Assembly (NCBI GenBank): GCA_010909165.1
Contig: MU008154.1
Location: 719,682-783,681, forward strand
Length of the DNA stretch: 64,000 nt
Direction of reading: 5' to 3'
From: Anthoceros angustus
Lineage: Eukaryota > Plantae > Anthocerotophyta
A model generated the notes under the pieces. That model did no database searches and was not told the origin of the DNA. It was given only the letters and a program-made list of their open reading frames with translations. Positions within the stretch are counted from its first letter, which is position 1. The number at the start of each line of letters is the position of its first letter. Below are positions 331-30,982 of this stretch, one piece after another. The translations under genes were made by a program, and so were the position numbers.

Positions 331-628
331 AGGCTAGGTCTATGTTACAGACTAGGTTATATATCAATCGATCTTACACCATTGCAATGGAAGATTAAGA
401 AGGAGAAGTTACCGCCGAGCTGCTGCAAGTCAACGGCTTTCTTTCATGGGGATGAATTTGTGGTGTTTAGCCCTCGCTCATGCATTTCATTAACATTATT
501 GATTGATTGAAGATTATTTGTCTTGTTTGAATTTTACCTTTGCATTCGTCTAGACCATTTTACCGCAATCTATGTAGTTGCCATATTTCAATCCTATGAA
601 AGATCCGTCCTTAGTGGACTTGAATAAA

Positions 629-706
629 TTTCTTCTTCTTCTTCTTCATCTTCTTCTTCTTGTTCTTCTTGTTCTTCTTCTCTTCTTCTTCTTCCTCTTC
701 TTCTTG

Positions 707-751
<45 letters not shown>

Positions 752-791
752 ATCTTCTTCTTCTCTTCTTCTTCTTCCTCTTCTTCTTCTT
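629..791. repeat. Compound (CTT/CAT/GTT/CCT)n microsatellite of the cassette (also 4824-4973, 8956-9105, 9441-9500; GAA form 14034-14168)
   Basis: Directly visible trinucleotide tract. Confidence 0.98.
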
Positions 792-994
792 ACAGTTATT
801 AATTGTATTTAGAAAACTATGAAACTTCTTCACCTCTAGGTATTGTATGTATACATGTTTAGTATAGTGATTATTTTTCACTAGCATAGTAAATAAAAAT
901 TATTTATTTAATTATTTATGTATGCTATTCTTTGCAACAACAAAGAAACATACAACCATATTACATACATATCAGGCCCTTCTTGTTTCCACCT

Positions 995-2089
995 TTAAAT
1001 TTGCATACTAAATTGTGCTAACATGAAGTCTTGCGATATGCAATCTCGCATCACTTGACCATGGTACACATCTAGCTCCGCATCCAAGACCTCTGCACTT
1101 TTGACTATGGCGGGTGGTTGGCTACCTCCTCTTCCTATAACATGTGCCGCCACACTCCCATTTGGGGGTCGTTGGTTTGCCGCTTGTATTATCATTCGCA
1201 TATCAATTGCCTCAATGGTCATTGGTTTGCCATCAAGATCCAAGTGGTTGTTTGGCTTAGTGGTTCGGAGCTTTTGAGAGAACCACAATAAGTAGGGTTG
1301 CAACAAAGTCGTGGCTCAAGTATCACAAAGTTAGAGACTTCAACTTAAACCGTGAGACAAGATCAAACAACAAAATCCAAATGTAAAATTGAAGTTCAAA
1401 ACCGCCCAATCATATATCGACAAGCTAGGCACAAGTAACACTAAATATGCACAAGTTCCACTAAGTACTTAAGCATCTAACTGCACACCAAAGTGTGTAG
1501 TTACAAACCTTGGAGGTTAAGTAGGGTGCGATTCGTCTTGCTGCTTATCTAAGTCGTGTGTCAACACCTCCGAGCCCCGCCTCGAGAACCTCTCCTCTGC
1601 CAGATTCGTCCGCATTGGATGACGAGCACCGCCACGCCTTGCTTTCTTTTATTGAGCTTGATCAAGTCATCAAGACTCAATTTGCCTTCCTTAGCGCAAC
1701 GGTTCCATACATATGGTGACCGCCACCGTGGTCCTTTGCCTTAAGCTTGATCAAGTCATGCTTATTCTTTTATTGAGCTTGATCAAGTCATCAAGACTCA
1801 ATTTGCCTTCCTTAGCAGCAGCGGTTTCATGTGGTGACCGCCACCGTGGTCCTTTGCCTTAAGCTTGATCAAGTCATGCTTATTCTTTTATTGAGCTTGA
1901 TCAAGTCATCAAGACTCAATTGTTAGCCATGCATGTGGTGACCGCCACCGTGGTCCTTTGCCTTAAGCTTGATCAAGTCATCCACATTCTTTTATTGAGC
2001 TTGATCAAGTCATCAAGACTTAGATGACCACAACGTTGTCTTAGGTCCTCGAGCAACTCATAATTATTGCTTGGTCGCGAGGAATTCAT
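995..2089 (-). CDS. Cassette multi-SLDDLIK gene, copy A (4 LSLDD repeats)
   Basis: Exon B ORF 995-1306; exon A homologous to copy B with one extra 117-bp repeat. Confidence 0.45.
1645..2022. repeat. ~117-120 bp repeats containing the palindrome CTTGATCAAG twice per unit (4 units in copy A, 3 in B, C, D, F)
   Basis: GAGCTTGATCAAGTCATCAAGACT recurs near 1654, 1774, 1893 and 1996, alternating with AAGCTTGATCAAGTCAT. Confidence 0.95.
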
Positions 2090-2225
2090 TATTGCTTGGA
2101 TGTTTGTGCTCTATAATGTATTTAAAATTGGTCAATATGGATTATTTTTGTGAAAATATATTCAACCGTGGTGGTTGCTCTCAATATCCTAGGCAAATCA
2201 ATTGTTAACCGTTGCAAGGATGAGC

Positions 2226-2540
2226 AATTTTACCGACCACTTATTGTTTGATAGATGTTCAATTTTATAGACCACTTATTGTTTGATAGATGTTCAATTT
2301 TATAGACCACTTATTGTTTGATAGATGTTCAATTTTATAGACCACTTATTGTTTGATAGATGTTCAATTTTATAGACCACTTATTGTTTGATAGATGTTC
2401 AATTTTATAGACCACTTATTGTTTGATAGATGTTCAATTTTATAGACCACTTATTGTTTGATAGATGTTCAATTTTACCGAGCACTTATTGTTTGATAGA
2501 TGTTCAATTTTATACACCACTTATTGTTTGATAGATGTTC
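2226..2540. repeat. 35-bp minisatellite GACCACTTATTGTTTGATAGATGTTCAATTTTATA, 9 copies (11 at 6322-6693, 9 at 10826-11140, ~11 inverted at 12337-12718, ~9 at 40147-40459)
   Basis: Exact 35-bp periodicity (TTATT at 2241, 2276 ... 2521); no spacers. Confidence 0.98.
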
Positions 2541-2690
2541 CTGAGGTGGAACGTAGCGAGGATGAGCAACTTAACAAACCACTTCTTGTTAGGCTTTCCT
2601 AAGGTGCAACGTTGCGAAGGTGGGCAACTCAACCAACCACTTAGATGATGGCTCCTTTATAGATGACCTTGAATACTAGATACTATACAG

Positions 2691-2880
2691 GGATATTTGA
2701 TATTTCCTTTCTAGCATCTTCAAATTGTTTTTTCTTGTGATAGGTACTATAAATGGATATTTGATATTTCCTTTATGGCACGTTCAAGTTGTTTTTCTTG
2801 TAATACATACTATTAATGGATATATGATATTTCCTTTCCAAAGATGTTCTAATTGTTTTTCTTGTGGTAGCGATATTATA
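2691..2880. repeat. Three degenerate ~64-bp repeats (GGATATTTGATATTTCCTTT...TTGTTTTTCTTGT) in each cassette copy
   Basis: Motif at ~2691, 2755 and 2819. Confidence 0.85.
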
Positions 2881-4942
2881 TTTATATTTGGTATTTTCTT
2901 TTGTGGTATCTTTGAATTTCTTTCACGCTCGTATTGGTCCATCTTAGTAACAAAATGGCATGGTTGTGCAACTTAATAATTAAGTCTCCTCACTTGCCTT
3001 CTTAATGTACAACATGTCAATTGGAGAACTAAACTACACCAAATGTAGGAATAGAAGTTGATGTGGAATAGTTACCACACGTGATTAGACAAAGGCATTT
3101 GTTTCGTTCCTTGATGAACTTTGTGACGTGAACTAAGCAATGTCATGCCTAACACTTCAGCCCAAATGTGGTAACATGGTCATAGTTTTAACCTTATTAA
3201 TGTTATGAATTGCGCTAAACTTACGTCAACTTAAGGCTGGCCTTGATTGCCACGAACCTTTATGTTGAAGCTCACGATGGCCTCCCAAAGCTTCTTACTA
3301 AGGGCTGTCCATGGCATTCAAACCTTCATCAAAAGGAGCCATTCAGATATCTAGTTTGTGACCGAAATCTTTATCAAGGTGCCCAATATTGCAAGGCAAG
3401 CGGCAATTAGGAGACCCCAATACTTTAGTGTAGATGAGACCATCCAATTTGTACACTTTACATAAAGAACTACTCATCATATTATGATTTCAAGGATGAT
3501 TTCAAGGACTATCAAACAAAACAAAACAAAACCTAGACTTGTAGGATAAGAGGTTAGTCGAGAGACTTTGCGTTGTGGAATAGCAGGTTTGACCTACTTT
3601 GGGCTTTTCTTGTGAATACATAAGCATTGGGATTCTCATCTTATCTCCATTTTCAAATTTCATGGCCAAACGGAAAAAACATTACTACAATAATATAAAT
3701 TAAACCACTAGCACAACAAAATTAAGGCATAATAAAGCAAAAAAGAATAAAACATAAAACATAAAACAAAACAAAACCTCAAACAACGGCAAAACAATAG
3801 AGAGAACCTTGTGCATCTTTTGAATCTTTAGACATTTGGCTTGGGCTCCAAGTGCACACCATACCACTTATTGTTTTTCTTGTGAATCAAGAAGAGCATC
3901 GGTCAAGGAAGATATTATTGTGCCAAATGTCTAAGAAACAAAGTCTTGTAGGATTCCAAAAAAGAGTATAGTCTTAGGATTGGTGATGCAGTGAAAGGTT
4001 GATAAAACAAGTTTGCACACCAAAATCACAGCAAGCCCTAAACACTCTAAATGTTTGTACGTCGGATTGTGAGAATGACCTTCTTTAGGAAGGCTCAAAA
4101 TTGGATAAAAATTGAAAATCATGCGTTGTGCACACGTAAACAAGACCTAAACTATTCAAAATGGTCTTTTTAGTGCGGATTTTTAGCATGCAATTTGGGG
4201 TTTGCGCCTCCGTGTGCAAAATTCGAGAAACCCCTACCCACGACGTAGAAACCCATGGAGTTAATGATATCGATCCCCGCTCCTTCTTGTCCCGGTGGTA
4301 ACACAATATCGGCGAAGGTTCGCCGTGCATTGAACTTGAGAATTTATGGTCTTGGTAATGACATTGTTGCACCACTTGTGGCTGCAAAGGAGTTTCTCAA
4401 TAGGCTAGAGGTCGATGTGGTTTGCCATCAAGATCCAAGTGGTTGTTTGGCTTGGAAAGGATCTTTGGTAGAGACCGCATATTGATTATGACTTTTCACT
4501 CCATGGATGATCGCCTCCAGTTATGAAGGCTAGGTCTATGTTACGACCTTTTATATATCAATACCGATCTTACACCATTGCAATGGAAGATTAAGAAGGT
4601 TACACCTTTTCATCGTCTGCAAGTCAACGGCTTTTCTTTCATGGGGATGAATTTGTGGTGTTTAGCCCTCGTTCATGCATTTCATTAACATTATTGATTG
4701 ATTGAAGATTATTTGTCTTGTTTGAATTTTACCTTTGCATTCGTCTAGACCATTTTACCGCAATCTATGTAGTTGCCATATTTCAATCCTATGAAAGATC
4801 CGTCCTTAGTGGACTTGAATAAATTTCTTCTTCTCTTCATCTTCTTCTTCTTGTTGTTCTTGTTGTTGTTGTTCTTCTTCTTCTTCCTCTTCATCTTCTT
4901 GTTCTTCTTCTTCCTTCTTCTTCTTCTTCTTCTTCTTCTTCA

Positions 4943-4973
<31 letters not shown>

Positions 4974-5175
4974 ACAGTTATTAATTGTATTTAGAAAACT
5001 ATGAAACTTCTTCACCTCTAGGTATTGTATGTATACATGTTTAGTATAGTGATTATTTTTCACTAGCATAGTAAATAAAAATTATTTATTTAATTATTTA
5101 TGTATGCTATTCTTTGCAACAACAAAGAAACATACAACCATATTACATACATATCAGCCCTTCTTGTTTCCACCT

Positions 5176-6186
5176 TTAAATTTGCATACTAAATTGTGCT
5201 AACATGAAGTCTTGCGATATGCAATCTCGCATCACTTGACCATGGTACACATCTAGCTCCGCATCCAAGACCTCTGCACTTTTGACTATGGCAGGAGGTC
5301 GTTGGCTACCTCCTCTTCCTATAACATGTGCCGCCACACTCCCATTTGGGGGTCGTTGGTTTGCCGCTTGTATTATCATTCGCATATCAATTGCCTCAAT
5401 GGTCATTGGTTTGCCATCAAGATCCAAGTGGTTGTTTGGCTTAGTGGTTCGACGAGCTTTCTGCAGTAAGAGAACCACAATAACCGTTAGGGTTGCAACA
5501 AAGTCAGGGCTCAAGTATCACAAAGTTAGAGACTTCAACTTAAACTGTGAGACAAGATCAAACAACAAAATCCAAATGTAAAAATTGAAGTTCAAAACCG
5601 CCCAATCATATATCGACAAGCTAGGGCACAAGTAACACTAAATATGCACAAGTTCCACTAAGTACTTAAGCATCTAACCTGGCACACCAAAGTGTGTAGT
5701 TACAAACCTTGGAGGTTAAGTAGGGTGCATTCGTCTTGCTACACGGTTATCTCAGAAGTCGTGTCAACACCTCCGAGCCCCGAGAACCTCTCGTCCTGGC
5801 AACAATTGCGTCCGCATTGGATGACGAGCACCGCCACGCCTTGCTTTCTTTTATTGAGCTTGATCAAGTCATCAAGACTCAATTGCCTTCCTTAGCGCAA
5901 CGGTTCCATACATATGGTGACCGCCACCGTGGTCCTTTGCCTTAAGCTTGATCAAGTCATGCTTATTCTTTTATTGAGCTTGATCAAGTCATCAAGACTC
6001 AATTGCCTTCCTTAGCAGCGGTTTCATGCATGTGGTGACCGCCACCGTGGTCCTTTGCCTTAAGCTTGATCAAGTCATCCACATTCTTTTATTGAGCTTG
6101 ATCAAGTCATCAAGACTTAGATGACCACAACGTTGTCTTAGGTCCTCGAGCAACTCATAATTATTGCTTGGTCGCGAGGAATTCAT
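5176..6186 (-). CDS. Putative 2-exon cassette gene (exon A 6186-5708, intron 5707-5461, exon B 5460-5176), ~250 aa, with repeated LSLDDLIKLNKK motifs (copy B)
   Basis: ATG AAT TCC start; donor AAG|GTTTGT; T-rich intron ending TTCTCTTACTGCAG|; exon B KARRTTKPNNHLDLDGKPMTIEAIDMRMII...QFSMQI* in phase 0. U-rich 3' region with AATAAA follows. Homopolymer indels interrupt exon A in this copy. Confidence 0.5.
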
Positions 6187-9100
6187 TATTGCTTGGATGT
6201 TTGTGCTCTATAATGTATTTAAAATTGGTCAATATGGATTATTTTTGTGAAAATATATTCAACCGTGGTGGTTGCTCTCAATATCCTAGGCAAATCAATT
6301 GTTAACCGTTGCAAGGATGAGCAATTTTACCACTTATTGTTTGATAGATGTTCAATTTTACCGACCACTTATTGTTTGATAGATGTTCAATTTTATAGAC
6401 CACTTATTGTTTGATAGATGTTCAATTTTATGGACCACTTATTGTTTGATAGATGTTCAATTTTATAGACCACTTATTGTTTGATAGATGTTCAATTTTA
6501 TGACCACTTATTGTTTGATAGATGTTCAATTTTACCACTTATTGTTTGATAGATGTTCAATTTTACCACTTATTGTTTGATAGATGTTCAATTTTATACA
6601 CCACTTATTGTTTGATAGATGTTCAATTTTACGAGCACTTATTGTTTGATAGATGTTCAATTTTATACACCACTTATTGTTTGATAGATGTTCACGAGGT
6701 GGAGCGTGGCGAGGATGAGCAACTTAACAAACCACTTCTTGTTAGGCTTTCCTAAGGTGCAACGCGTTGAAGGTGGGCAACTCAACCAACCACTTAGATG
6801 ATGGCTCCTTTATAGATGACCTTGAATACTAGATACTATACAGGATATTTGATATTTCCTTTCTAGCATCTTCAAATTGTTTTCTTGTGATAGGTACTAT
6901 AAATGGATATTTGATATTTCCTTTATGGCACGTTCAAGTTGTTTTCTTGTAATACATACTATTAATGGATATATGATATTTCCTTTCCAAAGATGTTCTA
7001 ATTGTTTTCTTGTGGTAGCGATATTATATTTATATTTGGTATTTTCTTTTGTGGTATCTTTGAATTTCTTTCACGCTCGTATTGGTCCATCTTAGTAACA
7101 AAATGGCATGGTTGTGCAACTTAATAATTAAGTCTCCTCACCTTGCCTTCTTAATGTACAACATGTCAATTGGAGAACTAAACTACACCAAATCTTTGTA
7201 GGAATAGAAGTTGATGTGGGAAATAGTTACCACACGTGATTAGACAAAGGCATTTGTTTCGTTCCTTGATGAACTTTGTGACGTGAACTAAGCAATGTCA
7301 TGCCTAACACTTCAGCCCAAATGTGGTAACATGGTCATAGTTTTAACCTTATTAATGTTATGAATTGCGTGCTAAACTTACGTCAACTTAAGGCTGGCCT
7401 TGATTGCCACGAACCTTTATGTTGAAGCTCACGATGGCCTCCCAAAACTGCTTCTTACTAAGGGCTGTCCATGGCATTCAAACCTTCATCAAAAGGAGCC
7501 ATTCGTATATCTAGTTTGCGCACGAAATCTTTATCAAGGTGCCCAATATTGCAAGGCAAGCGGCAATTAGGAGACCCCAATACTTTAGTGTAGATGAGAC
7601 CATCCAATTTGTACACTTTACATAAAGAACTACTCATCATATTATGATTTCAAGGATGATTTCAAGGACTATCAAACTACGTGAGCGGAAAAACAAACCT
7701 AGACTTGTAGGATAAGAGGTTAGTCGAGAGAGACTTTGCGTTGTGGAATAGGTGGTTTGACCTACTTTGGGCTTTTCTTGTGAATACATAAGCATTGGGA
7801 TTCTCATCTTATCTCCATTTTCAAATTTCATGGCCAAACGGAAAAAACATTACTACAATAATATAAATTAAACCACTAGCACAACAAAATTAAGGCATAA
7901 TAAAGCAAAAAGAATAAAACATAAAACATAAAACAAAACAAACCTCAAACAACGGCAAAACAATAGAGAGAACCTTGTGCATCTTTTGAATCTTTAGACA
8001 TTTGGCTTGGGCTCCAAGTGCACACCATACCACTTTGTTGTTCTTCTTCTTGTGAATCAAGAAGAGCATCGGTCAAGGAAGATATTATTGTGCCAAATGT
8101 CTAAGAAACAAAGTCTTGTAGGATTAGCGAGTATAGTCTTAGGATTGAACAGTGAAAGGTTGATAAAACAAGTTTGCACACCAAAATCACAGAAGCCCTA
8201 AACACTCTAAATGTTTGTACAGGCATTGTGAGAATGACCTTCTTTAGGAAGGCTCAAAATTGGATAAAAATTGAAAATCAAAACACGTAAACAAGACCTA
8301 AACTATTCAAAATGGTCTTTTTAGTGCGGATTTTTAGCATGCAATTTGGGGTTTCGCAAGTTATGAAGTTCTGGAGAAACCCTTTCTACCCAGACGTAGA
8401 AACCCATGGGAGTTAATGATATCGATCCCCGCTCCTTCTTGTCCCGGTGGTAACACAATATCGGAGATTGCTTACATTATTGAGAATTTATGGTCTTGGT
8501 AATGACATTGTTGCACCACTTGTGGCTGCAAAGGAGTTTCTCAATAGGCTAGAGGTCGATGTGGTCGTTGCTCGAGCCTTGGCTTGGAAAGGATGGTAGA
8601 GACCGCATATTGATTATGACTTTTCACTCCATGGATGATCGCCTCCAGTTATGAAGGCTAGGTCTATGTTACGACGACTCTTATATATCAATCGATCTTA
8701 CACCATTGCAATGGAAGATTAAGAAGGAGAAGTTACTTTCGAGTCTGCTGCAAGTCAACGGCTTTCTTTCATGGGGATGAATTTGTGGTGTTTAGCCCTC
8801 GTTCATGCATTTCATTAACATTATTGATTGATTGAAGATTATTTGTCTTGTTTGAATTTTACCTTTGCATTCGTCTAGACCATTTTACCGCAATCTATGT
8901 AGTTGCCATATTTCAATCCTATGACGAAGATCCGTCCTTAGTGGACTTGAATAAATTTCTTCTTCCTCTTCATCTTCTTCATTTGTTGTTGTTGTTGTTG
9001 TTCTTCTTCTTCTTCCTCTTCATCTTCTTGTTCTTCTTCTTCCTTCTTCTTCTTCTTCTTCTTCTTCTCTCTTCTTCTTCTTCTTCTTCTTCATCTTCTT

Positions 9101-9463
9101 CTTCTTACAGTTATTAATTGTATTTAGAAAACTATGAAACTTCTTCACCTCTAGGTATTGTATGTATACATGTTTAGTATAGTGATTATTTTTCACTAGC
9201 ATAGTAAATAAAAATTATTTATTTAATTATTTATGTATGCTATTCTTTGCAACAACAAAGAAACATACAACCATATTACATACATATCAGGCCCTTCTTG
9301 TTTCCACCTTTAAATTTGCATACTAAATTGTGCTAACATGAAGTCTTGCGATATGCAATCTCGCATCACTTGACCATGGTACACATCTAGCTCCGCATCC
9401 AAGACCTCTGCACTTTTGACTATGGCGGAGGTGGCTACCTCCTCTTCTTCTTCTTCTTCTTCA

Positions 9464-9498
<35 letters not shown>

Positions 9499-9703
9499 TT
9501 ACAGTTATTAATTGTATTTAGAAAACTATGAAACTTCTTCACCTCTAGGTATTGTATGTATACATGTTTAGTATAGTGATTATTTTTCACTAGCATAGTA
9601 AATAAAAATTATTTATTTAATTATTTATGTATGCTATTCTTTGCAACAACAAAGAAACATACAACCATATTACATACATATCAGGCCCTTCTTGTTTCCA
9701 CCT

Positions 9704-10690
9704 TTAAATTTGCATACTAAATTGTGCTAACATGAAGTCTTGCGATATGCAATCTCGCATCACTTGACCATGGTACACATCTAGCTCCGCATCCAAGACC
9801 TCTGCACTTTTGACTATGGCGGAGGTGGCTACCTCCTCTTCCTATAACATGTGCCGCCACACTCCCATTTGGGGTCGTTGGTTTGCCGCTTGTATTATCA
9901 TTCGCATATCAATTGCCTCAATGGTCATTGGTTTGCCATCAAGATCAAGTGGTTGTTTGGCTTAGTGGTTCGAGCTTTCGCAGAAGAGAACCACAATAAG
10001 TAGGGTTGCAACAAAGTCGGGCTCAAGTATCACAAAGTTAGAGACTTCAACTTAAACTGTGAGACAAGATCAAACAACAAAATCCAAATGTAAAATTGAA
10101 GTTCAAAACCGCCCAATCATATATCGACAAGCTAGGCACAAGTAACACTAAATATGCACAAGTTCCACTAAGTACTTAAGCATCTAACTGCACACCAAAG
10201 TGTGTAGTTACAAACCTTGGAGGTTAAGTAGGGTGCGATTCGTCTTGCTACGGTTATCAGTCGTGTGTCAACACCTCCGAGCCCCGCCGAGAACCTCTCG
10301 TCCTTGGCAGCGATTCGTCCGCATTGGATGACGAGCACCGCCACGCCTTGCTTTCTTTTATTGAGCTTGATCAAGTCATCAAGACTCAATTGCCTTCCTT
10401 AGCGCAACGGTTCCATACATATGGTGACCGCCACCGTGGTCCTTTGCCTTAAGCTTGATCAAGTCATGCTTATTCTTTTATTGAGCTTGATCAAGTCATC
10501 AAGACTCAATTGCCTTCCTTAGCGGTTTCATGCATGTGGTGACCGCCACCGTGGTCCTTTGCCTTAAGCTTGATCAAGTCATCCACATTCTTTTATTGAG
10601 CTTGATCAAGTCATCAAGACTTAGATGACCACAACGTTGTCTTAGGTCCTCGAGCAACTCATAATTATTGCTTGGTCGCGAGGAATTCAT
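9704..10690 (-). CDS. Cassette multi-SLDDLIK gene, copy C
   Basis: ORF 10168-10389 reads SLDDLIKLNKRK...RIAPYLTSK|V up to the putative donor at 10216. Confidence 0.45.
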
Positions 10691-12113
10691 TATTGCTTGG
10701 ATGTTTGTGCTCTATAATGTATTTAAAATTGGTCAATATGGATTATTTTTGTGAAAATATATTCAACCGTGGTGGTTGCTCTCAATATCCTAGGCAAATC
10801 AATTGTTAACCGTTGCAAGGATGAGCAATTTTACCGACCACTTATTGTTTGATAGATGTTCAATTTTATAGACCACTTATTGTTTGATAGATGTTCAATT
10901 TTATAGACCACTTATTGTTTGATAGATGTTCAATTTTATAGACCACTTATTGTTTGATAGATGTTCAATTTTACTGACCACTTATTGTTTGATAGATGTT
11001 CAATTTTACCGAGCACTTATTGTTTGATAGATGTTCAATTTTATAGACCACTTATTGTTTGATAGATGTTCAATTTTACCGAGCACTTATTGTTTGATAG
11101 ATGTTCAATTTTATACACCACTTATTGTTTGATAGATGTTCCTGAGGTGGAACGTAGCGAGGATGAGCAACTTAACAAACCACTTCTTGTTAGGCTTTCC
11201 TAAGGTGCAACGCGTTGAAGGTGGGCAACTCAACCAACCACTTAGATGATGGCTCCTTTATAGATGACCTTGAATACTAGATACTATACAGGATATTTGA
11301 TATTTCCTTTCTAGCATCTTCAAATTGTTTTTCTTGTGATAGGTACTATAAATGGATATTTGATATTTCCTTTATGGCACGTTCAAGTTGTTTTTCTTGT
11401 AATACATACTATTAATGGATATATGATATTTCCTTTCCAAAGATGTTCTAATTGTTTTCTTGTGGTAGCGATATTATATTTATATTTGGTATTTTCTTTT
11501 GTGGTATCTTTGAATTTCTTTCACGCTCGTATTGGTCCATCTTAGTAACAAAATGGCATGGTTGTGCAACTTAATAATTAAGTCTCCTCACCTTGCCTTC
11601 TTAATGTACAACATGTCAATTGAGAACTAAACTACACCAAATGCTGTAGGAATAGAAGTTGATGTGGGAAATAGTTACCACACGTGATTAGACAAAGGCA
11701 TTTGTTTCGTTCCTTGATGAACTTTGTGACGTGAACTAAGCAATGTCATGCCTAACACTTCAGCCCAAATGTGGTAACATGGTCATAGTTTTAACCTTAT
11801 TAATGTTATGAATTGCGTGCTAAACTTACGTCAACTTAAGGCTGGCCTTGATTGCCACGAACCTTTTATGTTGAAGCTCACGATGGCCTCCCAAAACTGC
11901 TTCTTACTAAGGGCTGTCCATGGCATTCAAACCTTCATCAAAAGGAGCCATTCGTATATCTAGTTTCGCGGCACCGAAATCTTTATCAAGGTGCCCAATA
12001 TTGCAAGGCGCAAGCGGCAATTAGGAGACCCCAATACTTTAGTGTAGATGAGACCATCCAATTTGTACACTTTACATAAAGAACTACTCATCATATTATG
12101 ATTTCAAGGACTG

Positions 12114-14720
12114 AAGGAAATATCAAATATCCATTTATAGTACCTATCACAAGAAAAAACAATTTGAAGATGCTAGAAAGGAAATATCAAATATCCCTGT
12201 ATAGTATCTAGTATTCAAGGTCATCTATAAAGGAGCCATCATCTAAGTGGTTGGTTGAGTTGCCCACCTTAGTTGCACCTTAGGAAAGCCTAACAAGAAG
12301 TGGTTTGTTAAGTTGCTCATCCTCGCTCCACCTCGTGAACATCTATCAAACAATAAGTGGTGTATAAAATTGAACATCTATCAAACAATAAGTGGTGTAT
12401 AAAATTGAACATCTATCAAACAATAAGTGCTCGTAAAATTGAACATCTATCAAACAATAAGTGGTCTATAAAATTGAACATCTATCAAACAATAAGTGGT
12501 CTATAAAATTGAACATCTATCAAACAATAAGTGGTCTATAAAATTGAACATCTATCAAACAATAAGTGGTCTATAAAATTGAACATCTATCAAACAATAA
12601 GTGGTCATAAAATTGAACATCTATCAAACAATAAGTGGTCTATAAAATTGAACATCTATCAAACAATAAGTGCTCGTAAAATTGAACATCTATCAAACAA
12701 TAAGTGGTCGGTAAAATTGCTCATCGCAAGGTTCCACCGAGAACTCCTAACAATTGATTGCCTAGGATATTGAGAGCAACCACCACGGTTGAATATATTT
12801 TCACAAAAATAATCCATATTGACCAATTTTAAATACATTATAGAGCACAAACATCCAAGCAATAATGAATTCCTCGCGACCAAGCAATAATTATGAGTTG
12901 CTCGAGGACCTAAGACAACGTTGTGGTCATCTAAGTCTTGACTTGATCAAGCTCAATAAAAGAATGTGGATGACTTGATCAAGCTTAAGGCAAAGGCCAC
13001 GGTCACCACATGCAAACCGCTGCTAAGGAAGGCAAATTGAGTCTTGATGACTTGATCAAGCTCAATAAAAGAATAAGCATGACTTGATCAAGCTTAAGGC
13101 AAAGGACCACGGTGGCGGTCACCATATGTATGGAACCGTTGCCGCTAAGGCAAATTGAGTCTTGATGACTTGATCAAGCTCAATAAAAGAAAGCAAGGCG
13201 TGGCGGTGCTCGTCATCCAATGCGGGGAAGCTGTTGCCAAGGCGAGAGGTTCTCGAGGCTCGGAGGTGTTGACACACGACTTACGAGATAAGTAGCAAGA
13301 CAGCGCACCCTACTTAACCTCCAAGGTTTGTAACTACACACTTTGGTGTGTGTTAGATGCTTAAGTACTTAGTGGAACTTGTGCATATTTAGTGTTACTT
13401 GTGCCCTAGCTTGTCGATATATGATTGCGGTTTTGAACTTCAATTTTACATTTGATTTTTGTTGTGATCTTGTCTCACAGTTTAAGTTGAAGTCTCTAAC
13501 TTTGTGATACTTGAGCCCCGACTTTGTTGCAACCCTAACGGATTGTGGTTCTCTTCGCGGTAAAGCTCGAACCACTAAGCCAAACAACCACTTGGATCTT
13601 GATGGCAAACCAATGACCATTGAGGCAATTGATATGCGAATGATAATACAAGCAAAACCAACGACCCCAAATGGGAGTGTGACATGTTATAGGAAGAGGA
13701 GGTAGCCGACCTCCGCCATAGTCAAAAGTGCAGAGGTCTTGGATGCGGAGCTAGATGTGTACCATGGTCAAGTGATGCGAGATTGCATATCGCAAGACTT
13801 CATGTTAGCACAATTTAGTATGCAAATTTAAAGGTGGAAACAAGAAGGGCCCGATATGTATGTAATATGGTTGTATGTTTCTTTGTTGTTGCAAAGAATA
13901 GCATACATAAATAATTAAATAAATAATTTTATTTACTATGCTAGTGAAAAATAATCACTATACTAAACATGTATACATACAATACCTAGAGGTGAAGAAG
14001 TTTCATAGTTTTCTAAATACAATTAATAACTGTAAGAAGGAAGAAGAAGAAGAAGAAGAAGATGATGAAGAAGAAGAAGAAGAAGAGGAGGAGGAAGAAG
14101 AAGAACAAGAAGATGAAGAGGAAGAAGAAGAAGAAGAACAACAACAACAACAACAAGATGAAGAAGAAACTTGTTCAAGTCCACTAAAGACGGATCTTCG
14201 TCATAGGATTGAAATATGGCAACTACATAGATTGCGGTAAAATGGTCTAGACGAATGCAAAGGTAAAATTCAAACAAGACAAATAATCTTCAATCAATCA
14301 ATAATGTTAATGAAATGCATGAGAGGGCTAAACACCACAAATTCATCCCCATGAAAGAAAGCTTGACTTGCAAGAGCAGCTCAAAAGTGTAACTTCTCCT
14401 TCTTAATCTTCCATTGCAATGGTGTAAGATTGATATATAACGAGTCGTAACATAGACCTAGCCTTCATAACTGGAGGCGATCATCCATGGAGTGAAAAGT
14501 CATAATCAATATGCGGTGCCGGCTCCTTTCGCAAGGCTCGAGCAAGCGTACATCGACCTCTAGCCTATTGAGAAACTCCTCCACAAGTGGTGCAACAATG
14601 TCATTACCAAGACCATAAATTTCAAGTTCAATGCACGGCAGCACCGTCGCCTTCGATATTGTGTTACCACCGTGACAAGAAGGAGCAGGGGGATCGATAT
14701 CATTAACTCCATGGGTTTCC
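12114..14720 (-). repeat. Inverted partial copy (D) of the cassette, unit positions ~2770 back to ~65
   Basis: AAGGAAATATCAAATATCCATTTATAG at 12114 is the reverse complement of unit ~2745-2772. The 35-bp array, 117-bp repeats and a (GAA)n tract follow in reverse order. Confidence 0.95.
12865..13831 (+). CDS. Cassette multi-SLDDLIK gene, inverted copy D
   Basis: ATGAATTCC at 12865; exon B peptide TTKPNNHLDLDGKPMTIEAIDMRMIIQ in ORF 13511-13705; stop at 13829-13831. Confidence 0.45.
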
Positions 14721-14965
14721 ACTTGCAGCCTAAATTGTGCTAACATGAAGTCTTGCGATGCAATCTGCATCACTTGACCATGGTACACATCTAGCTCGCA
14801 TCCAAGACCTCCTTTGACTATGGCGGAGGTGGTGGCTACCTCCTCTTCCTATAACATGTGCCGCCACACTCCCATTTGGGGGTCATTGGTTTGCCGCTTG
14901 TATTATCATTCGCATATCAATTGCCTCAATGGTCATTGGTTTGCCATCAAGATCCAAGTGGTTGT
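14715..14965 (+). repeat. Short direct-orientation cassette fragment (unit ~985-1250)
   Basis: TAAATTGTGCTAACATGAAGTCTTGCG...GATCCAAGTGGTTGT matches unit A 1010-1250. Confidence 0.9.
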
Positions 14966-15120
14966 GGAATGGCATTGGCACGCGGGGTGCCTTTGATGAC
15001 ATGTTTCCGGCATGTCGGGGGGAATAAAATGTTTGTATTTTTAAATGGGCTAACCCAGTGTGGGAACTAACTCACTTCCTTTCTAAGCGGTTGATCTGTG
15101 TTTAGCATATGTATATCAGA

Positions 15121-15547
15121 CGCTTTAAATAAACATCGAATACGGTTGATGAACTAGAGGAAGAAGTTGATGAAGCATCGCACTAAAGCTCCAATTGTCC
15201 CTCGAAATACATATTACTATGCATTGTGGGATGGATCAAGAAGACGGAGTTGCCGCATATTTTGAGATGGCCAAGGACTCAAGGAGGATCGCATAGCGAT
15301 CCAAGTGGTGGCATGGTACATAATTATACTTTGAAAGCCGGTGTACGCACTTTGGTCGAGGAATGATGCAAACTTGACTATTGCTATTATTCGTGACGTT
15401 ATCCACACGTATAATGGGTTCCTTCCAAAATTTATATTTGCAATGGATAACACATGCCGAGAATAAGAACGATTGCTTTTGCGTACCTCAATATGCTTGT
15501 TGAGGTGGGCACCTTTGAAAAGGTGAAGGTCGGTTCTCGTAGGGCAT
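15121..15547 (+). pseudogene. DDE transposase, DUF7869/Sola-like, 5' part
   Basis: Frameshifted motifs (D)GMDQxKTELPH, NDANLTIAII, LYLQMDNTCRENKN, LFAYLNMLVEVGTFEKVKVG..VGH; ends exactly at the gypsy TSD. Confidence 0.75.
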
Positions 15548-16176
15548 TGTGATTCGGACTTCTGGGGGTTAGAAATTAGGTAGGGCTTTGTTTTTTGTAG
15601 GAGTAAAGGATAAATGGCGGAAAAGGGAAATAAGCATGGGCACTCGGACGGCACTGGAGTATACTCCGGACTCCGGAGTGAGGAAGCGTACAGGGACCTA
15701 CTATGGTAGGCGCCACGATGCGGATAAGTCCGACCCACTCCAAGACCGAGGCGGGATAAATGCAGAAAATGCTGAGAGTTGGGCCGTGGGAGGCGGACCG
15801 GGCGCCGCCACGTGGGCAACTCAGGTGGAAGCAGCATCTGTGGCGGGGAAGTAACCTTGCCGAGGCCGTTATGGCGGTATTCACGCCGCGGACCGCGCGG
15901 CACAGAAGACCGAGTACGCGCAAGGCTGAGGGCGCGGGACGTAATAAGCCGCGCACTGCGCGCTACGGATGTGTGGAAGAGGCGCCCGCCTGCCGTTACT
16001 CCCACGAGCGGGCGGGGAAGGTCACGCAGCCGAGACACCGCGATCTCGCCCGCACCGCTCGGGCGGTATCTCGTGGACACAGACGCTCGCTCACCGCTGA
16101 GGTCGGAGCACAACGCGAAGAAGGCGCAACGTGCTGCCAGCCCGGCTGCGCCATGCAACCAAGGGAGGAGAAGGCG

Positions 16177-19100
16177 ATGGCACCCAAAAGCCCGCGAAGT
16201 TTGGGAGCCATGGAACCTTGTGGAGCGCAACATTGTGACCCGCGCTATCCGGACTTTGGGCCTGGCTCCGAGCGGGAGAATTGGTGCAGGAGTGGCATTT
16301 GGATGTGTTCCGGATAGTGCGGACATTTGTGTCTCTGGTCGGGAGTTCGCCCAAGATGCCGGGCGGTCAATAAGGAGGTGCGGTCCAAGAACCTCCGGAG
16401 GACCCAAGGCGATGGACCTTGAGGTCCCGAGGCGGCCTACAACCGCCCAAAGGAGGAAGAGGGGAGGGTGCCGAGCCCCTCAAGGCGGGGAAGATAGGGC
16501 CCGGCCACAGCGATGCTAAGGCTCGACGCAACGACCACCAACGGTTGGTCGATATCCGACTGTTGGACGGTCGAGTAAGGGCGGTGGCGGATCATTGTCC
16601 ATCGAACCTACTCACCAAGGTGGATCACCTTGGTGATAATCTGATAGTATTCACCTTGCGGCCGGGAAGAAGGCGGTGAGGAAGGATTATCTTCGCCGGT
16701 TTAGCGAGGCTTAGCTCGGCCGAAGCCTTAGCCATCAATACGATCCATGTATGGGGGCATTTCGAGCTCCTCAAGGAAGGAGAGCTTGAGCGAGCCCGAA
16801 AGGACCGAGGCCCCGCCAAGTGGAGGGCAAGGGCGCCGAGGGGAGGAGGCCGTCAAAGCCAAACGGACTCGGAGGAGGACGATCGAGGATTCCTGACTCC
16901 ATACGTCTGAACGGACCCCTCACCACCTGTGGAAGTATGGAAGAAATTCCCCGCCTCCCTCCTTCCGTGCCCCAACCAGCAGCCCAGAAGCGGCCCCGAC
17001 CCCAGCAGCCGCCACGGCCATCACTCCTACCGAGGAGCCCCACGACTGTGAGGGAGCCAAGAGACGCAAGACCACGGCTGGCGGCACCCGGTCGGTGCAG
17101 TTTCCCCCTTGCAGGTGAGGCGGAGGAAGCGGAGGACCCAAGGCGATGGACCTTGAGGTCCCGAGGCGGAGGACAGCGCAGCCACGAGCAGTCACATCGC
17201 CCGGCGGAAGGGCAAAAGGCTTGCTCCCGACTCTCACCTCCTCCGAGCCCTGTGGAGGAAAAGGGCGAGAAGGAGCTCGCGCCAAAAGGGCCAAGGAGGA
17301 AGCTCGGGCTCGGCCTCGGGGACCTAAGGGTCCCGATTAGGTCCGAGAACCCACCGACTTACTCAGGGTATGGAGGTCCTTGCGGACCGTGAGATCACGG
17401 CTCCACTACGGACTTTGTGGGAGCCTCACGTGACGTGGAAGAAACAGGGTCAGCTACCGTCATGGGCGGTATGCTCACAGTCTGCGGGATGGCCGAGAAG
17501 ACCTGGAGGTAGAAGCCACCCGCATGGTACTCCTCCGAGGCGGTTGGAGGAGCCCAGAGGCGAGAAGGAAGGCCAAGCCTCGGCCGATTGAGGAAGGCGG
17601 AGGCGAGAGGGAGGTCCGTCCATCCGCAAGGACCGGACCAAATTCCATTGGAGGAGCCCAGAGGCGAGAAGGAAGGCCAAGGAGGCGGAGGACCTCTGCA
17701 GGCGGAGGCGGAGGCGAGAAGGAGCTCGCGCCAAAAGGGCCAAGGAGGCGGAGGCGGAGGCGGCCGAGAGCCACGCCAATCAAGGCCGAGCAAGTGGAGG
17801 CTCGGTGAAGGTGGCCAAGGAGGCGGAGGCCACGGCCGATCGCGATCACTATCGGCGTGATCGGGCCGGTGGAGGGAGGCGGCCGAGAGCCACGCCAATC
17901 AAGGCCGAGCAGTGGCAAGAAGCGGAGGAAGAAGAAGGAGGAGGAGGCCGGAAATCGGGGACCTCGGTGCAGTGCAGAGGTAGAAGGGAGGCGGCAGGAG
18001 TTGGAGGACAGTAAGGACACCTTGGAATTACAACTCCAAGATGCGTCGGAGCAGCAAGGAATTCTCAATGGGAGAATCCAGGACTTCGAGCAGGAGATAG
18101 AGCGCCTCCAGCTCTGCCTGAAGATGGAGCAGGAGGTGGCGGAGCAAGCGCGGACCAACCAGGCCCAAGAAGCTCGCCACAAGGAGGTAGAGGATCTCCG
18201 GACTCAGCTCCGGGAGGTGGAGCAGCAGCGGCAGGAGATGGAGGACCGCAAGGAGACTTTGGAGCTGCAGCTCCAAACTATCATTGAGAGGAATGGTAGT
18301 CTGCAGGACATGGTCGCGGAGCAGGCGAAATAAAGCTCCATTGGCGCGGAGTCGGAGGCGATGGAGCAGGGGAGGCGTCGAGATGGAAAAGGGCACAGGT
18401 GAAGCCCGCGATCAGCGTGTTGCCGCTCGGAGGCGGGAGATGGCGGAGTTAACGGGAATGGACAAGGAGGCGGAGGAGGACAAGAAGCTGCGGTCGGTGA
18501 GGAAGTCGGAAGGGGAGCAGCTGCTATGGCGGGCAAGGCGCGGAGCAGGCGGAGGAGTTGGAGCAAGTGGAGCAGCGGCGGGAGGTGAGGCGACCTGGCA
18601 GCCTCGCGGCAACCCGGCTCGGCTATCAACAGCGGGAGGTGGAGCAACAAGCGGGGCTCGGCTCCGGGCATCTATGGCGAAGAGTATCGGTGCTCCGGCA
18701 CGTGGAAGAGGCAATCCAGAAGTGGATTCGGACTTTGCCTATTACCACGAGCTCAGGAGAGGCCTCTCGGCCACGCATAGGCGGACCTGGAAGGCTCGGA
18801 GGAAGAAGGGCACGAGAGACAGGACCCTAGGGGCCTGCTTGGAGACGACAAGGAGGGAGCCCAAGAGGAGCGGGACGCAGGACCCCAAGGTAAGTTCACC
18901 ACCACCCGATCCGGAGGGGGGTGAGGGGCAGTGCAGAGAGCCAACCCACCAAGACAAGGGTCGGGGTAAGGAGGAGGACCTAGCATCTGAGGTCCACAGG
19001 AAGTCCGGAGTTGGAGATCGGACCCGAGGTCCGGACTCGAGGTCCGGACTCGAGGTCCGGACTCGAGGTCCGGACTCGAGGTCCGGACCTTGGAGTTCGG

Positions 19101-19365
19101 GGCTCGGGTCGACCGGACTCGAGGTCGGGACTCCCGATGAGGAGCCCCTTCGACTTCGCTAGGGGAGCGGTGGCCGGAGGACCCAGGAGGCCGAGGGGAG
19201 GATGACGTTGTGTAGCGCGTTGTCGAGCCGCCACCGGTAACTGGGATTCGGGAAAGGAGGGGTCCGCCTCGCGGATCATCCGATTAGGCGCCTTGTGTCG
19301 GGAGATTGGACCACCAATCCCAAGGCGGAACCCGGACCTTCCATTACCGTGGCGAAGGAGATAGG
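16177..19365 (+). CDS. LTR-embedded extra ORF (MAPK... start; 'putative plant transposon protein'-like N-terminal domain plus long coiled coil), frameshifted; second copy ~26124-29367
   Basis: MAPKSPEVWEPWNLVERNIVTRAIRTLGLAP.RELVQEW; RIIVHWNLLTKVDHLGDNLIV...LGRIIxAGLARL; heptad-rich RRQELEDSKDTLELQLQDASEQQGILNGRIQDFEQEIERLQ (ORF 17857-18333). End position approximate. Confidence 0.6.
19026..19135. repeat. 13-bp quasi-palindromic tandem repeat GAGGTCCGGACTC in the gypsy LTR
   Basis: At least 4 perfect units 19026-19077 plus degenerate ones; degenerate at 29020-29160. Confidence 0.9.
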
Positions 19366-19452
19366 AGGAAGAGGATGGTAGGCGGCCGATTAGGGCATCT
19401 TGGTGGCCGTCGGCTCGGAATAGGGGTGTAATAAAGACGCCGACCGGCGTAG

Positions 19453-19482
19453 TATAAGAGGGCCGGGCTGCCACAGATAAAT
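19453..19482 (+). promoter_or_regulatory. Candidate LTR TATA box (TATAAG) and downstream ATAAA signal; same motif at ~29459
   Basis: The only AT-rich motif in a GC-rich LTR, conserved in both LTRs, ~550 bp before the LTR end. Confidence 0.45.
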
Positions 19483-20013
19483 CATCTTTCTTGGTGTTGA
19501 TGCGTTCTTGCGCACCTTGTGTGTCTTCCTAACGTGAGTCCCGAGTCACCGAAAGGTGCACGGCCCGGAGGGATTGATCGTGGTCCCGTGACGGACCTAA
19601 CGTGTTGTGGTGTGTGCGGGGAAGGGTGGCGGGGACCCGTGCTCGTCGAGCGCGACCGAGCGGAGCGTGTGAGCCGGAGGGACTCGGAGGCGTCTCGGCG
19701 CCGGACGAGAGGCCCGGTGGAGCAGCGGAGGAGGTCCGACTGTAACCCGCGCCTTCTAAGACCGATAAGTGTAGTGAGAGAGGAGGACGAGAGGTGTGAG
19801 AGACGGAGCAGGCACTGACAGGTCCTTAAACGCTTGGCCATACCGGCTGTGCGGTGTTGTTGCGAGTAGTTACGTGAACTAAGGGTGTGCGTTAGGGCGG
19901 TGGACGTAAAGTAAAGGCGAGAAAGCGCTGAAGCAGCCTATCATTCCTTTGGGAACGGACTTCTTCCTACAACGACACGGATTGTCGCGGTGGCCGTCGG
20001 TAGTCGCGCCACA

Positions 20014-20030
20014 TTTTGGCCGTTCTTGGA
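20014..20030 (+). promoter_or_regulatory. Gypsy primer-binding site (TTTTGGCCGTTCTTGGA, TGGCGCCGTT-like)
   Basis: Immediately after the LTR CA; resembles the Athila/Tat-type PBS with a deletion. The primer tRNA cannot be assigned. Confidence 0.55.
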
Positions 20031-21950
20031 ATGAAATCGTTCCGTAGCGTGGATGCGTGGAGGACGGAGGTAGTTAAGGGCAATTCGAGAGAGGACGTTG
20101 TGACCGGCGCTCGCACGAGCCGCGTGAGAGACGACGAGCTCGAGGCGAGACACGATAGCGGTGGTGGGTTGTCGGATCGAGAGGAGGACGCAGACCAAGT
20201 CAGCGGCGGTTCCTCATCCCTTGATCGCGATGGCAACAACGCCGACCAAGCAAGCGATTCTCTTTGGAGGTAAGAAGGAGAGGCCGAAACCTTCGTGGAG
20301 GATTTCGTGTCACGGGCAAACTTCAACGGAGAAGGTTCGGATCGCGACTCATTCATTGTTCCAAGGTGTCTAGGGGCGGCTCGGTGGTACCGGAGGAAAT
20401 ACCACCGCCTCGAGCACCCCACCGCAAACTTGAGCATTGAAGGATGCCTTCAGAAAGATTCCATGAATCGATCAAGAAGGCTACGCCTTGTCCAAACTCG
20501 AGAACAAGCGAGGAAAGACGGAGAAGTTGGGATCGTACATCGAACGGTTCTACGCTACCGGGACCGGCACCCCACTCACACTACCATGCAGGCGGTACGT
20601 TGGTTCGGAGCTGGCTTATCCAAGCCAATGGCTAAGCATGCTCGTTGGCGAAGAAAGATGTGAGCAAGGCGGTCCGGGGCGAGAACTATGAAGAATCGAT
20701 GCACCAACGACGGCCGAGGACTCCTCCGGAGGAAAGAAGAAAAAGAAGCGGGGTCGGACTCGAAGATGAAGAACCCTGACGAGGAGGATGATGAGACCGA
20801 GGCACGGAGGAAGAGGAAGAGGACTCAAGAAGAATCCGAGGTCATGGAAGAAGAAGAACCCGCCAAAAAATAAAGAAGAAGCCCGTAGTCGCGGAGGGTG
20901 GAAAAGAAGGAGGTCATGATGCCGCACGTGCAGGTCCACCAGCTCCTTTTGAAGGAAGTAGCGGGCCGAGGGAAGATCTAGAGCGGGTAATGAAGAGGGT
21001 GGAGGAGTTGACGATCAACCGTGAAGGATAAAGAACGGTAAGGTGGCCACCACGGTCCGACTCATTTGTGGTGTGCGGTGTGTCACCAACATGGGCATTC
21101 AAGGCCAACCGCCTCCGCCCGTGAACCGTGTGGAGTATGACTACGGGAAGAGTCAGGAAAGTGGGAGGATGCATACCAAGTGCAAGAAGCAGGACCACGG
21201 TATCCCGACGATGTACCCCATGCAGCTGGTCCGTCTGCATCGACCTCCGATGCAAAGACCGCATGGGAGCCCTCCAGAATTCTCGGCGGTGGTGCACTGT
21301 GGAACCCGGGCACTACTCCAACGCCCATACCCCACCGCAAGGTAACGGGACTTTGAACGCCTGTGGAGATGGCGGGGGCACATGGCGGGTACCTTGTGTC
21401 GAAACCTCGCTCGGACGGTGCGCTCGCCACCCGGCGAGAGCCCCGCCTCGCCTCCCTCCTAAGGCGGCGCATGCAAATTGAAGACGACAACCGGGCGGAG
21501 GGGAGGAGGCACCGAGGAGCTCGAACGAGGTGGTACGGGCAAGTTCGCCAAGGAGAAGAAGGCGGACACAGTCTTGGAAGTGTCAACCCGAGTCGCCGAG
21601 AAAAGGAAGGAAGAGGCAGTTTAAGAGGAAGAAAAATGGGGATAGTCCCACGGATACGGAGGACGGAACACCTGCGAAGGAAGCCGAACCCGCCAAAGAG
21701 GACGAGTTAAACCGGGCAGCTCTGCCAGAAGAAGAAACCTCCCAAAAGCCACCGGGAGTCTCCGGAGAAGCGGACTCACCTACGGCAACGCCGCAGTTTC
21801 CACCGGATGTGGTCCGAGAAGTGACCGAGATGCTTCAGGAAGAACTCCGACAGGACCCAGAAGTGGTCCGACCACCACAGCGCAGTGGCCAAACGCTGGA
21901 GGAGTCAAGGCGGTGGCGCGGCAGGAGAACCACCCGCCCTTTCAAGGTGG
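20030..21950 (+). pseudogene. gag: Gypsy gag (retrotransposon gag domain, Cys/His knuckles), frameshifted
   Basis: FVEDFVSRANFNGE, LGAARWYRRK, LSKLE..EKLGSYIERF, LWCAVCHQHGH (~21066), WCTV.EPGHYSNA. Confidence 0.7.
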
Positions 21951-22139
21951 CCGACTTGATGATGGACCAACAACACTTGGTGTCCCTTAGTTGTTAAAAG
22001 ACAACCAGTATCGGCGAAGTCCGGCCATCGAGCACAACCACGCCGGAACTCCTTGGTGGGAAGCAAACGTGGAGGTAAGGGTCGATCTCATACGGACCAC
22101 AGGCGCCGATGGTGCGGTGGAAATTGCGGGTGTGTAATT

Positions 22140-25100: not shown

Positions 25101-25445
25101 TCATGATGGAAAGGCGCTTAACGGATGAAGAGAGCCAAGCTGGAGGCGGTTGCTAGGGTTTGTGCAAAGATACGGAGGACCGGAAGAGGCGCAATCTGAG
25201 TACGAATCAGCAAACTATGGCATGATAGGCGCCTTAGGAATCAGGAGTATGTGAAGGAGGGAGATCTGGCCCTCCTTTACGACAGCCGACATATGCACTT
25301 CCCGGGTAAACTCCACCTACGATGGATGGGACCTTACCAAGTCGTACGGGTATACACCAATGGGTCCGTTCAGCTTCGGCAGTTGGATGGTGAATTGCTG
25401 CCCACTCGGGTGAACGGGTGGCGGGTGAAAAAGTACCACGCTTAG
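22140..25445 (+). pseudogene. pol: Gypsy pol: protease, RT, RNase H, integrase (frameshifted)
   Basis: LDTG..VNLITEAT (~22150); EWVxPIVVVPKK, RKLNAATK, FMEVFL.D (~23391); FHV..DVS; GGHYA..TTKKILEAGYWWPTMY..CDACQ, PFEKWGIDFVGP, ILVATDYCTRWVEA; GKLHLRWMGPY..VNGWRVKKY. Confidence 0.93.
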
Positions 25446-25468
25446 TGTTGGCGGAGACGCCAACAGGT

Positions 25469-25481
25469 GAGAAGGGGAGTA
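25469..25481 (+). promoter_or_regulatory. Gypsy polypurine tract GAGAAGGGGAG
   Basis: Lies just after the IN stop and directly before the TG of the 3' LTR. Confidence 0.85.
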
Positions 25482-30676: not shown

Positions 30677-30982
30677 TGTTGGAAATAAAGCCAACATTAG
30701 GATAAAGAACTTAGGGTTTCATTAAGTGAACCGTTTCAGAGTTTAGTATTTAAACAGTATACACATACAATTTTGTATTCAATTTATTGTTTTGTATCAA
30801 GTTTTGTTGCACCAAACTACTCTCCGTAAATTCTCATGGTATCGAGCTCCAAATGCTCTCTACTTGTCTCAAGGCATAATGCACGGGGTAGACCTCGTGC
30901 GATCGATGTCAACAAAGGAGGCAGCGTTGTGGTAGTACTAGTAGGCTACATAACACAAACCAAGTTCCTATAGACTGCTCGG

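Follow-up and report, generated by a model that had tools for sequence, protein, structure and literature searches.

The DNA analyzed here is a 64,000-nucleotide stretch of Anthoceros angustus (contig MU008154.1, positions 719,682 to 783,681), which we call the window and whose positions we count from its first letter. The left 15 kb of the window, together with a piece at 38.7 to 41.7 kb, consists of copies of a unit of about 4.18 kb, each carrying a copy of a gene in which a short motif resembling the UAP56-binding motif of the export adaptor ALYREF (ALY or THO4 in plants) is repeated in tandem. In a self-BLAST comparison, positions 995 to 5300 aligned with 5176 to 9432 and with the remaining copies at 92% to 97% identity as assembled. 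The array has a period of 4181 nt between 995 and 5176, and its kilobase-sized units stand head to tail, as in a macrosatellite. Three of the units are direct, one is inverted, and one is distant, lying past a gypsy and a copia element. We conclude, with moderate confidence, that this is a gene-bearing macrosatellite seeded by an ALY paralog that lacks the RNA recognition motif (RRM), carries multiple UAP56-binding motifs, and has a coding history, its present function being unproven. The five units are as follows.

995 to 5175, minus strand: repeat unit 1, about 4.18 kb (self-BLAST).
5176 to 9703, minus strand: repeat unit 2, longer owing to a tandem duplication of 394 bp (self-BLAST and tandem-repeat search).
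9704 to 12114, minus strand: repeat unit 3, ending at the inversion junction at 12114 (self-BLAST).
12114 to 14719, plus strand: repeat unit 4, inverted, with an exon 2 fragment next to it at 14723 to 14965.
38671 to 41695, minus strand: repeat unit 5, a partial unit with a complete gene, its left border formed by (TTC)166 at 38319 to 38818.

Pattern searches in the window found 16 identical LSLDDLIKLNK cores and 10 DLIKLK half-repeats over the five units. On the gene strand, each unit holds three or four of the cores and one to three half-repeats, followed by a stretch coding for KARRGG, and the conserved parts recur as five starts, five CAAG/GTTTGT donors, five KARRGG stretches, and six C-terminal exon ends. 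An earlier note on this DNA had described three or four motif repeats plus half-repeats per cassette, which our searches bear out; it had also placed them in one minus-strand reading frame, whereas in units 1 to 4 they occupy three frames with stops. A single continuous exon 1 frame is found only in unit 5, as an open reading frame (ORF) at 39490 to 39996 of 168 amino acids with three full motifs, and the motif spacings in this unit, 90 and 123 nt, are both divisible by 3. The parts of the gene copies on which our analysis draws are listed here.

39538 to 39996, minus strand: exon 1 of unit 5, 153 amino acids, with three LSLDDLIKL(N/K)KK motifs, one HDLIKLK half-repeat, and KARRGGAR (within the ORF at 39490 to 39996).
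39304 to 39537, minus strand: putative intron of unit 5, with the GT donor retained and the acceptor reading CGCG, not GCAG, as assembled.
39025 to 39303, minus strand: exon 2 of unit 5, open, 93 amino acids; stop codon at 39022 to 39024.
5708 to 6186, minus strand: exon 1 of unit 2, start codon ATG at 6186 to 6184, with three full motifs and two half-repeats, in three frames as assembled.
5461 to 5707, minus strand: putative GT-AG intron of unit 2, 247 nt, phase 0 at both ends, without a detected RRM remnant.
5179 to 5460, minus strand: exon 2 of unit 2, open, 94 amino acids; stop codon at 5176 to 5178 (hhalign and BLASTP).
998 to 2089, minus strand: gene copy of unit 1, with four full motifs (one additional 118-bp unit) and three half-repeats, exon 1 being frame-broken.
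1644 to 2020, minus strand, and also 5846 to 6117, 10353 to 10621, 12934 to 13191, and 39680 to 39930: motif-multiplying internal tandem repeat of 104 to 123 bp (Tandem Repeats Finder).

For this internal motif array, Tandem Repeats Finder gave periods of 104 to 118 with 90% to 96% matches. With respect to the splice sites, the earlier note had the KARRGG stretch followed by a GT-AG intron and then by a conserved 94-residue exon, in five copies. All five copies do have the KARRGG stretch and the GT donor, and unit 2 has both of its predicted sites (GT at 5707-5706 and AG at 5462-5461), each in phase 0; a canonical AG is limited to that unit. Units 2 and 5 have a fully open exon 2, unit 1 (998 to 1270) has one that is open from the third codon onward, and in units 3 and 4 the exon is broken. 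A single-sequence AlphaFold model of exon 1 of unit 5 had a pLDDT (predicted local distance difference test) score of 43.6 and showed short helices at each motif in an otherwise largely disordered chain. This low-confidence fold is compatible with a multi-motif protein and is not evidence for one.

Because the motif repeats are duplicates of one another, chance is irrelevant to their repetition, and the real question is one of homology. Exon 1 and exon 2 were searched separately. An exhaustive HMMER search with exon 2 against 1.84 billion representatives had a single nonrepeat match, P0003 (E, 7e-4), an ALY-like protein from the lycophyte Diphasiastrum. By pairwise BLASTP, exon 2 is colinear with residues 134 to 225 of this protein, from the end of the RRM to the C terminus, at 33% identity (E, 7e-10). 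Against a panel of 120 plant THO4/ALY-family proteins gathered with the Diphasiastrum protein, exon 2 gave about 125 alignments, all within the C-terminal ~95 residues and at 30% to 37% identity. Finally, hhalign comparison of exon 2 with an alignment of 28 plant ALYs gave a probability of 98.2% and an E value of 2.7e-14. The alignment takes in the final strand of the RRM (NN..LDGKPM.IE), an arginine/glycine linker that has been shortened (GRGG), and the plant-type C-terminal UAP56-binding motif, which in exon 2 of unit 2 reads SAEVLDAELDVYH..M. None of the six invariant columns of this motif (L, D, L, Y, H, M) has been lost, and LDGKPM is likewise retained. Exon 1 aligned with the plant ALY profile at the N-terminal motif only, over 15 columns (7 to 21) with an E value of 8.8e-5 and a probability of 60%; four of the five invariant columns (L, D, I, K) are kept in every repeat, and M is replaced by L.

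Since exon 2, searched independently, matches the C terminus of ALY and is colinear with exon 1 at the N terminus, the gene is related to ALY by descent, and by these alignments the likeness to ALYREF is a matter of ancestry and not of chance. They also uphold the earlier identification of the SLDDLIK repeats as putative ALYREF-type UAP56-binding motifs. The same note had allowed for convergence or chance, that is, for a gene unrelated to ALY with a short motif that happens to look like the one in ALYREF. Such a view can draw on exon 1, which by itself aligns to ALY over only 15 residues at a probability of 60%, and on the word-based protein searches, which found no relatives of either exon, with a search length window that leaves out full-length ALYs for exon 2. 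Given the hhalign match of exon 2 and its colinearity with exon 1, we consider it very unlikely and in effect refuted, unless the two exons come from different genes.

Other searches were weaker and pointed in the same direction. Exon 1 scored 17.1 bits with the Pfam family FYTT (PF07078, the UIF family) against a cutoff of 21, over profile positions 21 to 45, which cover the binding motif only, and exon 2 scored 19.9 bits with FoP_duplication (PF13865) against a threshold of 24.6 bits; atlas searches agreed with the direction of both subthreshold matches. The profile comparison with families containing UAP56-binding motifs, which the earlier note had suggested, thus yielded a plant ALY match by hhalign, while FYTT and FoP_duplication stayed below the Pfam threshold. 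Sequence searches of the PDB gave only REF2 at the motif (E, 0.75) and THO4 at the RRM end (E, 5.7); matches to ribosomal protein S7 in the same searches are due to chance. The exact exon 1 ORF had no match when looked up in public assemblies. The best two matches of the exhaustive search (P0001 and P0002), both long, internally repetitive proteins, were set aside as additive repeat artifacts.

Two parts of ALY are missing from the cassette gene. Pfam RRM_1 had no match in it, and a profile search for the RRM core, in three frames of the region from the motif module to exon 2 in the five copies, reached at most 3.4 bits, the same as shuffled sequence. As for the WxHD motif, through which ALYREF contacts the exon junction complex (EJC), exon 1 outside the UAP56-binding motif did not align with the ALY profile. 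A W..CIF string in the putative intron was considered as a WxHD motif and rejected as not above chance. Likewise, tblastn of plant ALYs raised the candidate of a decayed RRM read through the "intron" (with W..IF and LDF.V strings), which we rejected because the read-through "alignments" of different copies used two different frames of one DNA sequence and the profile score was at the level of shuffled sequence. In the liverwort ALY genes of Riccia (L001) and Calypogeia (L002), the last exon is preceded by an intron, at a position that cassette exon 2 spans without an intron, and comparison with the Riccia gene places the putative cassette acceptor within canonical exon 4. These two differences show that the gene has been rearranged, which may have come about through a processed copy or through an internal deletion.

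The cassette gene shares with land-plant ALY/THO4 (Arabidopsis ALY1 to ALY4; human ALYREF; yeast Yra1) the N-terminal motif (plant consensus, LDMSLDDLIKxNK), arginine/glycine stretches, the LDGKPM strand of the RRM, the C-terminal motif (SAEDLDAELExYHAEAM), and an identical order of parts. It differs from them in that it has neither the RRM core nor WxHD and carries the N-terminal motif three or four times rather than once. It is, moreover, only ~33% to 37% identical to them, whereas plant ALYs are far closer to each other, and it sits in a 4.2-kb tandem unit that, judged by relative depth, is probably high copy, without the last intron of the liverwort ALY genes. A predicted product that is mostly disordered, with UAP56-binding motifs, arginine-rich stretches, and no RRM, likens the gene to UIF/FYTTD1, UIEF1/UIEF2, and CHTOP; unlike the UIF family, however, it has a plant ALY-type C terminus and an RRM remnant that mark it as ALY. 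Judged by sequence, then, the cassette gene is ALY by descent, lacks two of the features that define that family (RRM and WxHD), and is UIF/UIEF-like by design. To our knowledge, no protein with three or four UAP56-binding motifs in tandem has been described, and literature searches found no report of an amplified, ampliconic, or multi-motif ALY.

Frames in this assembly are not reliable at face value, because the assembly is noisy. Between the two long terminal repeats (LTRs) of the neighboring gypsy element, identity is 79.9% and gap openings (403) outnumber mismatches (377), a pattern that fits read noise better than age, and this excess of gaps is a sign of a very noisy assembly in GC-rich DNA. 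The differences among the cassette copies similarly consist of many small indels, grouped in CG-rich spots. This carries a wider warning, as the numerous apparent gene arrays of this assembly will require accurate reads before functional claims are made.

A public DNA run (X1) provided a view of the family beyond the assembled copies. It contained 567 contigs on the 1.15-kb gene region of unit 5, 330 of them at least 99% alike. The word depth summed over X1 was 600 to 20,000 per bin, compared with 3 to 24 for single variant contigs, and the internally repeated motif segments had about 2 to 3 times the depth of exon 2. At two runs of five A's in exon 1 (39806 and 39683), the 1-nt loss that breaks exon 1 in units 1 to 4 was shown by just 14% and 10% of X1 depth, the in-frame state accounting for 86% to 90% at both sites. 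Because their losses at these runs are rare in X1 depth, units 1 to 4 look like a local minority subfamily. About 40% of X1 depth carried a 1-nt deletion at a run of five C's in exon 2 (39188), which makes pseudogenes of many genomic copies. The cassette family is a true mixture of frame-keeping and broken copies. In a DNA run from a second organism (X2), a single 257-nt contig of depth 3.1 was 90% to 95% alike and covered exon 2 only (39079 to 39323); it may represent a relative of the gene that is present in few copies in a different species or strain.

A different account of the same array is that it is a dead satellite: an ALY pseudogene or fragment was never functional in this form, a minisatellite blind to coding tripled the motif, and the open frames are leftovers of a recent amplification. 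Several of our results fit this account and count against the coding gene that we favor. The reading frame is broken in four of the window's five copies, and indel density in the exons equals that in the intron. In units 1 to 4 (1 to 14.7 kb), the motifs are split among three frames with stops between them, and exon 1 has 9 to 12 frameshifting indels per copy relative to the intact unit 5; as assembled, these units would be unable to encode a multi-motif protein. The acceptor site is unconserved as assembled, with a canonical CAG in unit 2 only, which leaves the two-exon model unproven. None of the listed runs holding the stretch is recorded as RNA, and one run, which we guessed to be RNA of the same sample, had no contig on the gene, although this is no proof of absence. 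Broken copies, equal indel density in exons and intron, noncanonical acceptors, and the lack of RNA finds all weaken the case for a present function. The exon 2 frameshift in about 40% of X1 depth, the missing last canonical intron (as in a processed pseudogene), and the richness of the unit in other simple tandem repeats also agree with a dead satellite, as does a summed depth in the thousands, which is more satellite-like than gene-family-like and which gives copy number in relative terms only. Furthermore, assembly noise weakens every statement about frames, and the copies, which differ mainly by indels, are too alike and too noisy for a comparison of nonsynonymous and synonymous substitution rates (dN/dS).

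A fragment that never functioned in this form is, however, at odds with the state of the reading frames. Although exon 2 shares only ~33% to 37% identity with any ALY, its frame has stayed open, and both binding motifs retain their family-invariant residues. In a neutral-drift simulation from the Riccia sequence to 39% to 55% identity, in which indels were ignored, ~100 codons stayed free of stops in just 6% to 13% of trials, and this applies to an open exon 2 alone; the intact copy has 153 plus 93 open codons and in-frame repeat spacings, and the frame of exon 1 is preserved in the majority read state. Considering the open exon 2, the drift simulation, the 153-codon exon 1, the in-frame spacings, and the majority read state, the evidence favors, without proving, a past protein-coding role for this gene. 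We regard a dead satellite of this kind as a real possibility, albeit a somewhat doubtful one.

On these grounds we propose a history for the ALY-derived array. First, a divergent ALY paralog would have shed its messenger ribonucleoprotein (mRNP)-recognition module while remaining protein coding. Its motif module would then have tripled in frame, via an internal tandem duplication of ~120 bp. Following this, unequal exchange would have amplified the gene together with ~3 kb of flanks, a 35-bp minisatellite and a (TTC)n tract included, and the copies would afterwards have begun to decay. The two flanking repeats lie at the following positions.

2225 to 2540, 6329 to 6694, 10826 to 11141, 12336 to 12719, and 40148 to 40461, no strand assigned: 35-bp minisatellite, one per unit (tandem-repeat search).
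4825 to 4973, 630 to 791, 8957 to 9106, and 14034 to 14168, no strand assigned: (TTC)n microsatellite within the unit, 3' of the gene (tandem-repeat search).

Further repeats of ~63 bp occur in each unit. The rest of the unit yielded no match to a Pfam domain, an Rfam family, or a tRNA. This bears on whether the copies could instead have spread by transposition, with an ALY fragment captured by a transposon of the Pack-MULE, Helitron, or CACTA type or carried inside a retroelement. The window is certainly rich in transposons, with a gypsy element at 15.5 to 30 kb and a copia element at 30 to 38 kb. But the copies abut head to tail at a constant period of ~4.18 kb with no DNA between them, and the unit has no transposase, reverse transcriptase, or integrase domain, its ORFs having been searched without a Pfam match. 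We give this alternative little credence.

Amplification of an ordinary gene within a macrosatellite has precedents in humans, where gene-bearing macrosatellites include D4Z4/DUX4 (3.3 kb), RS447/USP17 (4.7 kb), TAF11-like, and CT47 (PMC5687341). As in the array described here, their kilobase units stand head to tail, the ORF was derived from an ordinary gene, and competence is limited to some of the copies (PMC5687341). In contrast to these human arrays of tens to ~150 units, the present one belongs to a land plant, holds a truncated export adaptor, and has a depth suggesting far more copies. If our proposal is true, it would provide a plant case of a class that is well described mainly in humans; if the array is dead, it shows that a major satellite can originate from a housekeeping export gene. 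The Marchantia sex chromosome has a repeat-embedded, male-specific gene family. With ampliconic sex-limited genes such as these, the cassette shares the position of the gene inside a repeat, a probably high number of copies, and the presence of both intact and decayed members.

What a translated copy might do can be considered in light of the known workings of TREX, the transcription-export complex. In human TREX, ALYREF binds UAP56 solely via its two motifs, each of them weak (dissociation constant, ~2.9 uM), and stable binding to the THO-UAP56 tetramer requires many motifs, gathered as ALYREF oligomerizes on EJCs via WxHD and the RRM (PMC7614608). The UAP56-binding adaptors of Arabidopsis comprise ALY1 to ALY4 and the RRM-less UIEF1 and UIEF2, which bind RNA as well as UAP56 (PMC8421220). 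If a copy of the cassette gene were translated, each chain would carry three N-terminal motifs and one C-terminal motif, without WxHD or the RRM. Such a four-motif chain is predicted to bind with high avidity to the UAP56 molecules of the THO tetramer, independently of the EJC and free of splicing marks. The protein could then be a decoy titrating UAP56 or a splicing-independent adaptor acting through its short arginine-glycine-glycine stretches.

A further step would be expression of some of the units, perhaps confined to a tissue such as the gametangia, to give an RRM-less ALY with four UAP56-binding motifs that acts as a high-avidity, EJC-independent TREX binder. In this scenario, the protein could promote the export of unspliced or repeat-derived RNA or serve as a dosage-dependent UAP56 decoy, and amplification would have been driven by genetic conflict, the gene being sex limited, located on a B chromosome, or ampliconic in the manner of a drive element. 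We consider this extended scenario unlikely. The earlier note had raised the possibility that the protein recruits or titrates TREX, for example for the export of repeat or transposon RNA. We detected no feature of a transposon or a virus in the unit, so the picture of a parasite that hijacks TREX has no support so far. If expressed, however, the gene would offer a natural and direct test of the avidity model, the part that recognizes mRNPs having been discarded and the motif multiplied within one chain.

The array also shows rearrangements of its own. At 12114, direct position ~3499 joins inverted position ~2773, and a second inversion junction lies at ~14720, the sequence being direct again at 14723; both junctions may be true rearrangements or assembly fold-backs. 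In unit 2, a 394-bp tandem duplication at 9048 to 9841, its halves 99% identical, doubles the edge of the (TTC)n tract along with the final ~40 codons of exon 2, and its product is the extra copy of the C-terminal motif at 9376 to 9411. A (TTC) tract of ~50 copies is present in every unit. The (TTC)166 tract at 38319 to 38818 is 99% pure, lies at the exact left edge of unit 5, and represents a roughly threefold expansion there.

Outside the array, the gypsy-type LTR retrotransposon spans 15555 to 29996, with an integrase at 24149 to 24943 and LTRs of ~4.4 kb and 60% GC. The copia-type element at ~30100 to 38200, with gag/Pol_BBD at 32431 to 33384 and RVT_2 at 35149 to 35688, lies between unit 5 and the remainder of the array; an identical 19-bp repeat at 30771 and 37100 probably lies in its LTRs. 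The only ordinary gene seen in the window is an armadillo-repeat host gene, whose exons lie at 49822 to 52828 on the minus strand (Pfam Arm; E, 2.8e-7), with weak matches to ARMC5 and plant U-box ARM proteins. It is adjoined by tandem repeats of 45, 61, and 75 bp at 48622 to 49018.

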